A stretch of DNA of 64,000 bases from Bugula neritina (GCA_964035545.1 OZ037766.1:7616722-7680721); one strand, 5' to 3'; shown: positions 17,980 through 61,100, counted from the first letter of the stretch. Translations and numbers: made by a program. Notes: a model not told the origin generated them from the sequence alone.

Positions 17980-18400
17980 TCATACACTCATAGAACATAC
18001 TGACACTAGTGACACAGTATTAGTATAAGTATAACTGTTATGATTATCATTATGATTACGACAAAAACTAAAATAGCTTAGTAAATATAACGATGGTCTT
18101 ACTCTTAGAAAAAGTATAACTATAAGTATAACTATTACTATTAGTATTAGTATTACTATTAATATTACCATAACTTGAGTATAACTATAGTATAAGTATA
18201 AGTAAGCAAATAACTATTAAGCAACTGTACGAAGCACTAGTATAAGCAGTAGTAGTTGTACTACTACTAGTACTACCACTGCCACGATTCAATACTTCAA
18301 CTTGGTCTTGTCTTTTGACTTTTGAGAAAAAACATAATCTAATGATAATGATAACGATAAAGAGGTTAGGCTTAAGCCTAAGGCTAACTCCATGAACTAT
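17980..18400. repeat. Degenerate hexamer-lattice tract (RSY-ATN/NAT-RSY)
   Basis: AGTATAACTATAAGTATAACT, ATTACTATTAGT and the perfect palindrome TTAGGCTTAAGCCTAA (18366-18381). Confidence 0.75.
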
Positions 18401-19509
18401 ATTGCATCACCACTGTGAATTCAAATTTAGGCTGACTTAACAAATAACAAAACGCAACTACTTTATTTCATTTGTATAGCTATGCCAATGGTTAGCAATA
18501 CCAATATGAATATGAATTTATGACCATCAGGTATAAACGCGAAGCAACACTTACGGAAACATCGCTTTAGAACAATTGTCGACAAAGTATTATTTCGAGA
18601 TGATTTGTTTATTTCATGAAATCATGATAAGTTTTTATTTATTTTATTAAAAACAAAAAAATGTCTTTAAAAAAATTGTGTTTTTTATGTAAATTATAAA
18701 AAGATTATAATATTTTAGCGGGTCTACTTATTAGAAAAAAGACATTTCTATTTGAACAAAACGGAAATGGTCATGATGTATCTAGAAAGATAATAACTCT
18801 AACATACCAAGTAAATATACGTTGAAATAAGAAGATAACTCTCAATTATAGCCATGTACCACCTCTGCTGTCTATAAATGGAAGCTCCACCACCGCAAAC
18901 TTATATTTTTAAAGTTACACTTGTAGTAAGCACATATAACGCATAGCACTCAGTATTTTCATGTTTTAAAACTACTACAAGCTCATATAGCCAATACAAA
19001 TAAGTTTGCAAGTTATAATTATAGTATATTATTGTTAGGACTTTGAATACTGACTGCTAGATAACTTGTGTAAGATAACTACAAATAAAGCTTCTAGCAC
19101 TATTTAGAGCAAAACATATAAGAAATAGTAAGTTTTATCTAACAAGTGAAGTGTCTTTATAATTAATGCATGTCTAGTAGAAGCACTGAGCCTAATGCTC
19201 ACACTAGGTAAATATTATCTTAACAATATAGAAAAAAATGTTCAATTTTAAAATGGTCATCAAACTTCCAGCACTAAAGTAGCAGCCTGCAAGAAAAAGG
19301 GTAACCGACCTCAATTTTCTTATAAAATATTAGTTTGGCAAACTTGAGTTAATTGTGCTTGTGGTGATACAATAGCAAACAAATTTAAATGAGATACTTG
19401 CCTGTAAAAGAAATCAAATATGCATAATTAAATATAATATTCTAAATTATCAAAACTAAGTAGTTTGGAAACTTGCAATATAGCTAAATTAATGTACCTT
19501 TTCATGAGT

Positions 19510-19692
19510 TGTGTGTGTGTGTGTGTGTGTGTGTGTGTGTGTGTGTGTGTGTGTGTGTGTGTGTGTGTGTGTGTGTGTGTGTGTGTGTGTGTGTGTGTGT
19601 GTGTGTGTGTGTGTGTGTGTGTGTGTGTGTGTGTGTGTGTGTGTGTGTGTGTGTGTGTGTGTGTGTGTGTGTGTATGTGTGTGTGTGTGTGT
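19510..19692 (+). repeat. (GT)n microsatellite
   Basis: Near-perfect GT run of about 180 bp. Confidence 0.99.
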
Positions 19693-20541
19693 TAATAGCA
19701 ATAATATGTTCTTGATATAACTAATAACTATAACTATAAAAACTATACTCTGGTGTGACGGCACACTTATCCAAAATATACAGGTGGAGACCTACAATCA
19801 GAAGATTTGATATTTAACAGGCATGCCAATTCCTATCTTTGTGCAAAAACATGCACTACTACACAGTTATACTCAAAACAGCCTGGGTACCCTACTTTTG
19901 TGATTCCTTTCTACTGGTGAACCATCTAGCTATGGGGCAGACAACTCCTTACCGTTAGTTTAATAATTACCGTGGTGTTAGACAATACAGCAGGTTTAAG
20001 CATTAATTTTATTTGTTTCATAGAGTTATACTGTCAATTTTAATAGTGGGATAACTCTATAATTTGTTTCAACCAATAATATAGTTATAACTTGCTATAG
20101 GCTCAGTACTATGACAATCAGTATATGTAATGGCAACCCACCAGTTATTGCCAGCTATTTGTTTTGCTTGTGGTTTTAAAAGGACTTTACTGTCACAGTA
20201 ATTTTCGGTTTTGCTTTACCCAAGCTACCTCAAATACCTTTTTCAGGGTCATTTTGTCATATGTTACACAGACAAATAACTTAGAGCTACTCAGATATGT
20301 TTTTTTCTATGATCTCTGAACTTATCAGTCGATTCTTGATAAATAGTTTATCTAGAGCTCAATTGTGTCATATGTCATGTGATTGATAGCAGAAGAGGAA
20401 GTTTTGGTGTGCTGCCATGCTTGACTAAGAGAGCAGAGATAAAAATATCTGATTACTAAATTTCTATTTGTGCTATAAAAGTTGTATTCAGCAGTGGTAA
20501 ACTTGGAAAAGTAGATGTGGTACGATAGCAGGGTACAGGAT

Positions 20542-20615
20542 GTAGGTGCAGTATAATGGAGAAATTGAGAAGAGCCTGTGTTCTAGATTAAAAATGTGGC
20601 AAAATAAGTTATGTT
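20542..20615 (+). repeat. Dispersed repeat fragment (copy 1)
   Basis: GTAGGTGCAGTATAATGGAGAAATTGAGAAGAGCC...TTCTAGATTAAAAATGTGGCAAAA closely matches 44898-44971. Confidence 0.75.
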
Positions 20616-58100: not shown

Positions 58101-59734
58101 CCAGCTAAATTTTGCATTGAGTCACATATTTACAACATGAAAGACTTTTTGCTTGTGAAGTTTGACATCCCTTCACAAATGCCTGTACCTTTCTTTTACA
58201 AATAGAATGAAACAAAAGATAATGGCTAATGTTTCAGCAAATCAATGAATGAAGATTCTTTATTTGACAACCAAAAAGGAAGAAACCTCATACTAGTTAT
58301 TGAATGCATTTCAAACAAAAATAAACTGGTAGATTAAAGCGTTGTGTACAAAACTGCTAAACCTAATACTAAAATGTACAACAAATGCAGACTTGTATCA
58401 GCTTTTTAAAGTTTGCATAGGGTGCCTCCCTAAAATTTTTTGAAGTAACTTCAAATAAATTTGCAAAATTTGTTACAGCAACATTTGACAAGACGTACAA
58501 TATGCAAGTTATTAGGAAAACAAATACAATTACATCATGTATACAACTGAATTTGTTGTACACAGTGCTATATAACGTTTCTAAGTATATAAAATCAAAA
58601 TAAGTTATAAGGCTGTGGCAGGCAGTTACTGACATAAACATATGTAACAATATGAATATTTCAAGACGTGCACTTGTAGGTATATATTTATAATGAAGTG
58701 GAAATGATTCCCAACATGACCCAACAGCCACATCACTATCAGTCAGTCATATTTTGTGATGATGATCAAAATGTTAAAATAAATCAATATTGCATAACAG
58801 CTGTGCATTATTAGTATTAGTATTACTTATTATTAGTATTAGTAACAGTATAACTATAAATATAAGTATACTTATTCATATTGGCTATTACTATTATTAC
58901 TGATAATATTACTATTAGTATTAGACTTAGCTATAGTATTAGTATTACTAATAGTAATAGTAATACTATTATTACTAATACTTATAGTTATTGGCTATAA
59001 CTATAACTATAAGTATACTTATACAGTTATAGCCAATAACTATAAGTATACTTATACTAATACTAAATAAGTATTCAATTTTATAATAAATTAATTTTAA
59101 AATAAATAATTACATTTATTATTTAATTTTATAATAATGAATGAATAGCATTAATATTAAATTTAATTATAATTACTGTATAAGAACGAATAGAATTAAA
59201 TTATTTTTATTAAATACTAATTTCAACTTTAATTTGTAATTCAATTACTAATACTAATAGTAATAGTAATACTAATAGTAATACTAATAGTATTATTATT
59301 AGTTATTTAGTACTACATAGTAACTTTAAGTCTTTAAGTTTAATATTGAATTTTATGCAACACTAATTGAATAGTAATACTAATACTAATACTAATACTG
59401 TAATAGTGATACTAATACCAAGTCTAATAGTAATACTAATACTAATAGTAATACTAATAGTAATACTAATACTAATAGTAATACTAATACTAATAGTAAT
59501 ACTAATACTAATAGTAATACTAATAATAATGCAATAGTTATACTTATACTTATAGTAATACTTATAGTTATACTAATCAAGTAATAGACTTACTCTTAGA
59601 GTGATACTTAGTCTTATACAGTAATTTAGACAGTAATAGTTGATACGTACAAACTTCAAAGACTTGAAATGAGATACTAGCACAGATCCAAGTGCTCCTT
59701 TCCCTCCGTAAACTATAACTTTTTGAGCAGACAT
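55200..59734 (-). CDS. QDPR: Dihydropteridine reductase
   Basis: [81 protein letters not shown] and [18 protein letters not shown] (stop 55200-55202). Confidence 0.96.
55390..55554. mobile_element. hAT (Charlie-type) MITE, 165 bp, in the last QDPR intron
   Basis: Perfect 14-bp TIRs CAGGGGTGGGCAAC (55390-55403) and GTTGCCCACCCCTG (55541-55554); 8-bp TSD CGCTATAC/CTCTATAC with one mismatch. Confidence 0.9.
58800..59640. repeat. Degenerate hexamer-lattice tract in QDPR intron 1
   Basis: (ACTAATAGTAAT)n, AGTATAACTATA and GGCTATAACTAT. Confidence 0.85.
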
Positions 59735-60080
59735 TCTGATTCTGAACAAATCTTAAGCTGTTCTTAAAAATGTAGCGGTTTTGAATGAATGGACTTGGAG
59801 CGTAATAGTCAATAGCGCTTTTACGTGTACTTGCAGAATTGTTCTATGTGCAGCTCCTATTTGGGAATGCAGCAATTTGGGTTTTCGAGTTTAAAGTTGG
59901 GGGCTTCACTAAAATCTCAACTCCAAACTCAAGAACTTTAAATTACTGCAATCATTCACTCCCAACTATTTCGCACCGCTGCAAGTTAAAACTTTAGTAG
60001 CTAAACTTCCGTCATAACCGGTGTTCTCTCCCTCAGAGCTTGCAAACCTACCCTGAACTCTAAAGTTGAAATTATTTAAG
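59735..60080. promoter_or_regulatory. Probable bidirectional promoter, QDPR / MIC60-like gene
   Basis: CpG-richer island between two lattice tracts; CTTCCG (ETS-like) and TTACGT motifs; candidate + strand donor GTTAG near 60080. Confidence 0.45.
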
Positions 60081-60229
60081 TTAGACTTAGTATTATTAAA
60101 TGCTTTGCTTATAATACCTAATTACAGAGCGTCCTTTTAATTTTGCTAAACATGACATTATAACTATATTATATTGTGTGTTTAAATTAAACTAAGCCAC
60201 TAATGTTTTAGTTTAGTAAAACTAAAGCA

Positions 60230-61100
60230 AAATGAAAATGTAATCATAATGATAATGATAATCATAATGATTCAAATTCAGATTGCTAAACTCTAAGTCA
60301 ATAATGAATAACGTTAAGTTTAACTTCAAGTGATAAGTTTAACAGATATAAGAAAAATATCAATATAAATATGATTATCATTAAGTAATAGTACTAGTAG
60401 TAATACTAATTAACATCAATAACTAATAGTAATACTAATACTAATAGTAATAGTAATACTAATAGTGAGTAATACTTATACTATCGTCTATCAGTATCAC
60501 TATCAGTACGAGTATAACTATAAATATTAAATAAGCATATACTGTACCATAGCACTGAGTGATAACCATTACCACATGACTTTGGCTATCACTATGAGCA
60601 TGGCTATGCTAATACTAATAGCAATACTATTAGACTTAGTAATAGTAATACTAACACAGTATCATTGAGTATGAGTATCAGTCTGAATATGGCTATCACT
60701 ATGAGTATGAGCTTACTCTATGACATTAACTAGTAGTAGTAGTACTAGTAGTATTAGTATAAGTAGAGTCATAGTGATAGTCTAACATTAACAGTAATTA
60801 AATCACTGTATAAATCTAAATGATAGTGAGGGTGATATACATAAATCATAAAGGGTAATGATAATCATATTGATGGTCATAACAAGGTCCATGAAGTTAT
60901 CATTCAACTTGCAAGCTCATGAAATTAAAGTTTACAGCATGAATTAAATTTAATGTTATATCCTAAGTTGACACAAAAATACTAATATAATTATTCAGTA
61001 TAAATATCAATAGTAAAACTATTACCAAGTAGTAGTAGTAGTAGTCATACTTTATACAGTGTATCTTTATAGTTGATAGTATCACTATTAGTAATGAAAA
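60230..61100. repeat. Degenerate hexamer-lattice tract in the predicted first intron of the MIC60-like gene
   Basis: AGTATCACTATCAGT, GCTATCACTATGAGTATGAGC and ACTAATAGTAAT. Confidence 0.8.

Follow-up and report, generated by a model that had tools for sequence, protein, structure and literature searches.

A 64,000-nucleotide stretch of the Bugula neritina genome (OZ037766.1:7616722-7680721, from an assembly of 216,009,554 bases), called the window below, contains six tracts built on a six-base lattice in which one C or G (S) recurs every 6 bp among A and T (W). The tracts flank promoter cores that have retained CpG and lie on their transcribed side. The lattice has a quantum of 6 bp, varies at C and G only while its A/T position is constant, turns over fast, is bound to one place relative to the genes, and is restricted to a lineage. 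Considering these properties, the explanation that we put forward, and to which we give an even chance of being correct, is that break repair or duplication close to promoters, acting at the level of DNA, has left the tracts as a heritable scar. The involvement of breaks, the action of an enzyme, the link with the germ line, and the absence of any need for a sequence-specific function are the parts of this explanation that we infer.

The six tracts had been pointed out in an earlier description made from the sequence only (the sequence-only reading), and their periodicity is confirmed as real and far above chance. Self-match at lag 6 in 120-bp windows flagged 18021-18240, 31821-32720, 33161-33720, 43141-43420, 58781-59620, and 60201-60840, and Tandem Repeats Finder (TRF) reported arrays of 6-mers, 12-mers, and 18-mers in each tract. 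The period-6 filter was passed by 167 scan windows, whereas none passed in 50 first-order Markov resamples and shuffles of 200-bp blocks gave 0.3 on average; the remaining period-6 signals corresponded to (TG)n or (AT)n arrays and to a coding mucin repeat. The weak run suspected near 42080-42130 was also recovered (Table 1). As the same reading held, the tracts are not copies of each other and form no single family: they share only short, out-of-order matches limited to lattice units, and no Rfam family matches their sequence.

The position of the tracts was the next property to be defined. The window has 33% G+C and is strongly depleted in CpG (observed/expected ratio, o/e, 0.376), and four noncoding cores in it retain CpG (18401-18701, 32751-33101, 42451-42751, and 59701-60001, with o/e of 1.32, 1.23, 1.12, and 0.73, respectively), showing the local ratio near 1 of CpG-island-type sequence in a CpG-depleted genome. 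Each core adjoins one or two tracts. When averaged over 11 flanks, 7 from the window and 4 from elsewhere in the genome, the lag-6 self-match was 0.53-0.59 in the first 500 bp, and in 10 of the 11 it dropped smoothly from the core to the background (0.27) by 1.0-1.2 kb. No lattice was seen at 18700-19500, on the untranscribed side of the KRR1 core, which is the one clearly untranscribed flank in the window; the period-6 scan of the window likewise found none at the mucin or tetraspanin 5′ ends or in internal introns, in agreement with the sequence-only reading. The position-specific system that had been proposed is supported by these data, with lattice on both sides of the SERINC core (tracts 2 and 3) and of the QDPR/MIC60 core (tracts 5 and 6).

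The claim that the tracts lie mostly in first introns was sustained for SERINC and QDPR, in which exon 1 is verified by homology, while the positions of exon 1 in KRR1, INCENP, the MIC60-like gene, and the kelch gene are predicted. Since exon 1 and its donor are conserved in SERINC, and QDPR exon 1 encodes the conserved glycine-rich motif, tracts 3 and 5 lie in true cis-spliced first introns. SERINC exon 1 with its donor is also present in the orthologous locus of a diverged relative (contig L001, 4537-4568), and exon 2 (from 34262) matches Pfam Serinc proteins; QDPR exon 1 has 57-60% identity with the QDPR exon 1 of two other animals (L032 and L033), and tract 5 begins within ~10 bp of its donor. 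Given the location of the first coding exon of Band_7, tract 2 lies upstream of that exon, between it and the shared core, in what could be either a 5′ untranslated region intron or intergenic DNA.

As to the grammar of the lattice, a common 6-bp rule stands as it had been described, and its form, given as RSY-ATN, can be sharpened to one S per 6 bp. The S-S autocorrelation at lag 6 was 0.144 in the tracts vs ~0.055 elsewhere, and the context of S was A-S-T in 38% and T-S-A in 18% of the cases, giving 55% for the pair, against 23.5% for both combined in the rest of the window. The TpA autocorrelation peaks at lags 3, 6, and 9; the lag-6 peak of ApT, the dinucleotide stressed before, is weaker. 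The most frequent form is (TA-S-TA-W)n, among many unit families (TAATAS, TATTAS, AGTATA, ATSATT, and GC-rich ones). C and G are balanced in each tract and near-equal also when summed on the sense strand of six genes, which argues for a feature of DNA and not of RNA. By comparison with equally AT-rich DNA, poly(A)-signal hexamers are depleted 3.6-fold in the tracts (2.4 vs 8.8/kb) and runs of four or more A or T (A4+/T4+) are depleted 5-fold (5.1 vs 27.6/kb).

Strand switching, which was part of the earlier description, was seen as 8 clean switches between A-type and T-type units that keep the phase of the lattice, some of them being perfect inverted repeats around a central S. Short palindromes as the class of switch points were rejected, because 6-bp palindromes are not enriched in the tracts (143 observed vs 215 in shuffles). 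The mosaic tract 2 folds as a single strand far better than shuffles (z = -4.2), which together with the clean switches indicates that inverted duplications occur, as a second and rarer process. A uniform array folds no better than its shuffles (z = +1.05), and hairpin potential was rejected as a general property of the lattice. Variant units with AGACT or AGTCT recur at 32330-32410, 58920-58930, and 59420-59430 of the window and at ~22340-22480 of a 200-kb genome sample; this motif is a five-base palindrome whose central A/T swaps, set in TAA-G[A/T]C-TAA, so that the roles of S and W are exchanged with respect to TA-S-TA.

The differences between neighbouring units carry most of the argument. 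Self-match in the tracts was 0.56 at lag 6 vs 0.24-0.27 at lags 5 and 7, so neighbouring units are real copies. Isolated differences between neighbours that were alike in all other respects numbered 64, of which 52 (81%) were C↔G, 3 were A↔T, and 2 (3%) were transitions. TA-W-TA is just as symmetric a context, yet none of the 64 was an A↔T swap there. A very different spectrum was obtained for the flanking DNA, where 8,464 bases aligned with a sibling lineage contained 641 substitutions, 31 (4.8%) of them C↔G and 400 (62%) transitions (Fisher p = 5e-45 for the C↔G excess in the lattice). The (TG)91 and (AT)80 arrays of the window are long and pure, with 98% matches, and show the product of slippage in this DNA; the hexamer tracts differ from them, being mosaics with 66-89% of matches. 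The lattice is not an ordinary microsatellite, in line with the sequence-only reading, for which the tracts were no clean microsatellites: neither the runs of identical units nor the point-mutation spectrum between units that belong to one were found.

The same rules were followed across the genome. The strict 24-nt pattern (TA-S-TA-W)x4 had 11,009 forward and 11,004 reverse matches, where ~0.02 would be expected from an estimate based on composition, and the reversed pattern, of the T-S-A class, had ~790 per strand. The first 100 matches of the strict pattern formed 23 clusters over 1.5 Mb, which suggests a few thousand lattice loci in the genome even under this strict test. One clear tract-core-tract structure was present in a random 200-kb sample, so the tracts are not at every gene; the arrangement of the window is also seen at another locus (L025). 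The four units shared the same W in 73% of the 11,009 strict windows, and the same S in only 341 of them (3.1%) and in 0 of 46 local ones. With S assigned at random, 12.5% of the windows would be uniform, and in a normal microsatellite the figure would approach 100%; uniform S runs are thus four times rarer than under coin-flipping. The counts of the S patterns were CCCC 173, GGGG ~168, CGCG 1087, CGGC 1178, GCCG ~1165, CCGC 952, GCGG ~967, CCCG 523, CGGG ~476, CCGG 1055, and GGCC 466. Two doublet classes are in excess, x-yy-x with 21.3% and xx-yy with 13.8% of the strict windows, and the share of neighbouring unit pairs that differ at S is between 0.52 and 0.69. A first-order Markov model and an independent coin-flip model of the C/G series were both rejected on these pattern counts.

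We then compared the tracts with the sibling lineage, represented by contigs of two Joint Genome Institute (JGI) samples (L027 and L034) and of three 2016 Illumina runs (L028, L035, and L036), which are ~99% identical to each other where compared and differ by 7.6% from the window outside the tracts. The contigs of the JGI samples break at the tract edge, and those of the three runs carry lattice at the orthologous site and end a little inside the tract; since these runs are independent of the assembly, the tracts are not an assembly artefact. In the orthologous lattice there were 18 columns involving C or G, of which 15 were identical, 3 were transitions, and none was C↔G. If C↔G changes in place had randomized S, nearly half of the orthologous S sites should be different between the lineages. 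The absence of such changes argues, and we hold this with moderate confidence, that the C/G swap would be made upon the gain of a unit and not in place. Regarding length, the sub-tract 58800-59076 has 277 bp in the window vs ~110 bp in L028, and gaps of at least 3 bp were exactly 6 bp in 5 of 5 cases in the alignable tract zone vs 3 of 32 in flanking DNA. From this comparison, the tract appears to be remodelled in blocks, with fast turnover of its length. Sibling contigs across tract 3 or the cores were searched for with the core open reading frame (ORF) as a protein query and, among the metagenome contigs, with a degenerate SERINC exon-1 DNA pattern, with no match, and a QDPR exon-1 pattern retrieved unrelated organisms only.

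Orthologous first introns, a comparison which the sequence-only reading had recommended, were examined in more distant species. In the low-coverage European Nucleotide Archive contig L001, the Band_7(-)/SERINC(+) arrangement is kept and the exon DNA is 72-78% identical. SERINC intron 1 contains there an A-S-T lattice with other spacers (GTC-A-S-T, then TA-rich units), and outside exons only loose lattice matches align with the window. No lattice was found in the orthologous first introns of three other animals (L002, L032, and L033). Taken together, the lattice is lineage-restricted, and it is conserved in place and not in sequence. In L001, a ~31-bp unit is repeated in tandem ~17 times in the intron behind Band_7 exon 1 (3300-3820), and the array ends in a short lattice of hexamers. 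Literature searches, including the text of Bugula and bryozoan genome papers, yielded no published description of the lattice.

Taking into account these results, we propose that a process acts in the first kilobase of transcribed noncoding DNA behind promoters that are open in the germ line. DNA would be gained or lost six bases at a time; five of the bases would be copied from the neighbouring unit, and the sixth, at the centre of A-S-T or T-S-A, would end as C or G, being more often the complement of that of the neighbour. It is possible that break ends join over an odd-length self-complementary overhang, in which the unpairable middle base is resolved either way; alternatively, one base might be added without template. 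Such joints could come from repeated break-and-repair or from transposon insertion-excision in promoter chromatin open in the germ line, and the arrays would later be scrambled by duplication of several units at once, by inverted (fold-back) duplication, and by ordinary point mutation. The lack of tracts at tissue-specific genes, the mucins and the tetraspanin among them, would presumably be due to promoters that are closed in the germ line. Of the origins that the sequence-only reading had offered, a slippage or template-switch footprint survives in part: copying at the DNA level fits best, given that the differences are almost exclusively C↔G, that these swaps are not seen in place between sibling lineages, and that length turns over fast, and plain slippage is contradicted.

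Cycles of transposon insertion and excision are the best-known source of joints that carry a complement or are resolved either way; in Sleeping Beauty-type joints the centre is variable because the unpairable middle base is resolved either way, and many DNA transposons and some nucleases favour open 5′ gene regions. In a simulation that adds every new unit beside its template as a flipped copy, two-thirds of the neighbours differed at equilibrium, and the shortage of uniform runs was matched at a flip probability of ~0.8-0.85. When hairpin-type (hAT) transposons excise, the base put at the joint is complementary to the flanking one (PMC5873905). The swaps of the lattice behave in this manner, going to the complement at one position per unit.

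Several points weigh against the scar explanation. The duplication of hAT elements has 8 bp, and both the period and the indel quantum of the lattice are 6 bp. TA-C[A/T]G-TA joints numbered 11 in 8 kb of tract (1.4/kb) vs 0.36/kb in the background, the tracts being TA-richer; with a density of only ~4x the background in very TA-rich DNA, Tc1/mariner-type joints are not clearly enriched and were set aside as the main source. No enzyme or transposon behind the lattice was identified, no transposase survey having been made. The flipped-copy simulation is too low on doublets (x-yy-x ~17% vs 21.3% and xx-yy ~11% vs 13.8%) and is therefore incomplete. Moreover, CCGG is 2.3x commoner than GGCC, with C-units 5′ and G-units 3′ on both strands; since each of these patterns is its own reverse complement in C/G order, this is a polarity that no model tried accounts for. 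The test of the lattice between lineages comprises one locus and 18 columns in repetitive DNA of uncertain alignment. The depletion of poly(A) signals and A/T runs could be a selected property, the conserved position of the tracts in two species fits selection equally well, and the whole basis is assembled genome and contig sequence.

Selection is in fact the explanation that competes best, and we consider it possible, if rather unlikely. The tracts would be a promoter-proximal element whose bulk property is kept while the exact sequence drifts, working behind housekeeping promoters as a domain of chromatin or of transcription elongation, and the properties under selection could be a TpA per 3 bp, the lack of A/T runs, of all-A/T hexamers able to serve as poly(A) signals on either strand, and of CpG, and strand symmetry. 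The conservation of position without sequence in L001 agrees with it, as do a length scale of ~0.6-1 kb that is consistent in 10 of the 11 flanks, the two depletions given above, and the persistence of C/G at its lattice position, which ordinary mutation would erode. However, selection does not account for the near-identity of neighbouring copies or for the rarity of swaps in TA-W-TA (0/64, with W uniform in 73%); the sub-tract length differs 2.5-fold between sibling lineages, and many unit families are in use. An explanation that joins both ideas seems to us unlikely: a dedicated enzyme system conserved in bryozoans of this lineage, for example, a domesticated transposase or nuclease that active-promoter chromatin recruits, would make staggered breaks a short way downstream of germ-line-active starts, repair would write 6-bp units with a randomized central C/G, and the lattice, strand-symmetric and free of CpG, A-tracts, and polyadenylation signals, would have been co-opted as the standard chromatin domain flanking housekeeping promoters.

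In-place hypermutation of C:G pairs in arrays made by slippage, by a deaminase or through a C/G lesion with C inserted opposite the abasic site, is very unlikely. The swaps are confined to C:G pairs, and the most frequent context, TA-C-T / A-G-TA, has the shape of a WRCY/RGYW hotspot; the zone of somatic hypermutation also resembles the ~0.1-1 kb lattice zone behind the start. Nevertheless, 0 of 18 orthologous C↔G changes at 7.6% divergence has P < 0.005 if at least 30% of the sites had flipped, transitions, which would be expected too, are only 2 of the 64 neighbour differences, and saturation alone is insufficient to bring uniform arrays to 3.1% when random assignment gives 12.5%. In addition, the C/G outside the palindromic trimer looks stable, by eye and uncounted, in the GTC-A-S-T units of L001. 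The in-place C:G substitutions, transitions included, of an AID/APOBEC-like process were thus not what the tracts displayed.

Ordinary microsatellites, made by hexamer slippage and normal point mutation and just happening to be frequent near promoters, are very unlikely indeed. An enrichment of tandem repeats at promoters is known from other organisms (PMC3566118) and would agree with such an explanation. The 6-, 12-, and 18-bp arrays reported by TRF are also in line with this origin, but the mosaic character of the tracts beside the pure arrays of the same window, the 3.1% of uniform four-unit runs, and a spectrum of neighbour differences that is the reverse of the normal one all oppose it. 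One transposon or satellite family, or an artefact of assembly, is hardly credible: the tract sequences are low-complexity and loosely alike, but the stretches that match from tract to tract or from species to species are short, not collinear, and limited to lattice units, with no common consensus or defined ends and no Rfam match, and the three 2016 Illumina runs and the two JGI samples gave contigs that extend to the tract edge or contain lattice at the orthologous site.

The sequence-only reading had also suggested a substrate for ApT modification, which received no support. MT-A70 genes are found at three loci of the host chromosomes (C1, C4, and C7), as is usual for animals, and no dedicated MT-A70 DNA methyltransferase beyond the METTL3/14/4 set was found in these chromosomes; an extra ApT methyltransferase was rejected on this ground. 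Two small unplaced contigs (C133:33571-34068 and C115:28423-28959) have full-length MT-A70 matches with 3 and 6 in-frame TAA; they probably come from an organism in which TAA is a sense codon, such as a ciliate living on the colony.

The features of the window are collected in Table 1. By open reading frames and homology, its genes are two mucin-like genes (+), KRR1 (-), a tetraspanin (-), Band_7 (-), SERINC (+), a kelch-repeat gene (-), INCENP (+), QDPR (-), and the start of a MIC60-like gene (+). On the minus strand of the KRR1 core there is an ATG followed by a GTAAGT donor near 18550-18565, the putative exon 1.

Table 1: Lattice tracts, promoter cores, and first exons in the window.
Feature	Coordinates	Strand	Position or role	Sequence characteristics
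Tract 1	17980-18400		Transcribed (left) side of KRR1 core	A-S-T is the top C/G context, 35%
Tract 2	31780-32720		Left of Band_7/SERINC core	Both unit orientations; GC-richer stretch at 32449-32560
Tract 3	33165-33960		Proximal SERINC intron 1	Starts 18 bp past the donor, stops ~300 bp before exon 2
Weak hexamer run	42088-42111		Kelch side of kelch/INCENP core	TRF (ATAATG)4; lag-6 self-match barely above background
Tract 4	42900-43500			T-S-A class, ATCATT/ATGATT units; T-S-A is 42% of C/G contexts
Tract 5	58800-59640		Promoter-proximal half of QDPR intron 1	AT-rich nonlattice spacer at ~59077-59240
Tract 6	60230-61100		MIC60-like side of QDPR/MIC60 core	
Core by tract 1	18401-18701		Putative KRR1 promoter and short exon 1	CpG o/e 1.32
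Band_7/SERINC core	32721-33116		Between tracts 2 and 3	12 CpG, o/e 1.23
Kelch/INCENP core	42451-42751		Putative divergent promoter	9 CpG, o/e 1.12
QDPR/MIC60-like core	59641-60229		Divergent promoter	Holds a ~160-bp palindromic fold-back repeat at ~59830-59992
Band_7 (SPFH) first coding exon	30230-30361	-		tblastx match to exon 1 of the orthologue in L001
SERINC coding exon 1	33117-33146	+		10 codons, then GTAAGT donor (to 33152)
QDPR coding exon 1	59651-59734	-		28 codons, glycine-rich Rossmann motif; GT donor at 59650-59649

The fold-back repeat of the QDPR/MIC60 core (59830-59992) is a nearly perfect palindrome of ~160 bp, which also occurs at L025:1480-1625 and L026:1470-1650. It was found at 50 or more places of the genome (at least 50, on seven chromosomes) with 70-88% identity, often on both strands of the same spot, and it looks like a fold-back miniature inverted-repeat transposable element or a common promoter module. 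Mobile DNA does land in such cores, and nothing ties this repeat to the lattice. A copy of QDPR exon 1 with 80% identity lies ~4.4 Mb away on the same chromosome (L024, assembly C2:12031517-12034598), where the match is flanked by lattice on each side and by a CpG-rich stretch on one side only; it may be a QDPR paralogue or a duplicated promoter fragment. The putative tetraspanin 5′ region (23500-24660) is another type of repeat-rich 5′ region, without A-S-T lattice, with (CACG)10, nine copies of a 10-bp repeat, and a long (TG)n with some CpG.

If the scar explanation were true, thousands of bryozoan promoters would hold a kilobase-long record of one mutational process, whose fixed 6-bp quantum and complement swap match no described signature of repair, slippage, or transposition. 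It would offer a natural system for germ-line breakage and repair directed by transcription or open chromatin, and would show a mutational bias building a genome-wide sequence class. Selection, if it were the cause, would make the lattice a promoter-flanking element of a new kind, in the place where other animals have CpG-island shores. In practical terms, the tract-core-tract structure is a marker by which housekeeping-type promoters and first introns of this genome can be predicted with the sequence only.

By comparison with known systems, the promoter short tandem repeats of yeast and human are, like the lattice, located at gene starts, variable in length, and fast-evolving; they are mostly pure mono- to trinucleotide or GC-rich repeats made by slippage, whereas the lattice forms kilobase hexamer mosaics in which C and G alternate and uniform runs are avoided. 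Transposon excision footprints share with it a short duplication and a joint base that is complemented or resolved either way, but each known footprint stems from one event and has a duplication of 8 bp or of TA, while the lattice has a 6-bp quantum stacked over hundreds of bp at thousands of loci. Somatic hypermutation by AID also acts in the first 1-2 kb behind the start and makes C↔G changes in WRCY-like contexts; it consists of somatic point substitutions, many of them transitions, without duplication of units, in contrast with the 0 of 18 in-place C↔G changes of the lattice. Domains of ApT N6-adenine methylation in ciliates, green algae, and early fungi are likewise ApT-rich and placed just downstream of active starts; here only the three animal-type MT-A70 genes were found in the host chromosomes, and the TpA period is stronger than that of ApT. 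Finally, as in CpG-island promoters, the cores are CpG-retaining and belong to housekeeping-type promoters (o/e 1.1-1.3 vs 0.38), but the lattice that flanks them is a periodic, repetitive sequence nearly devoid of CpG, and no comparable flank is known for vertebrate CpG islands.

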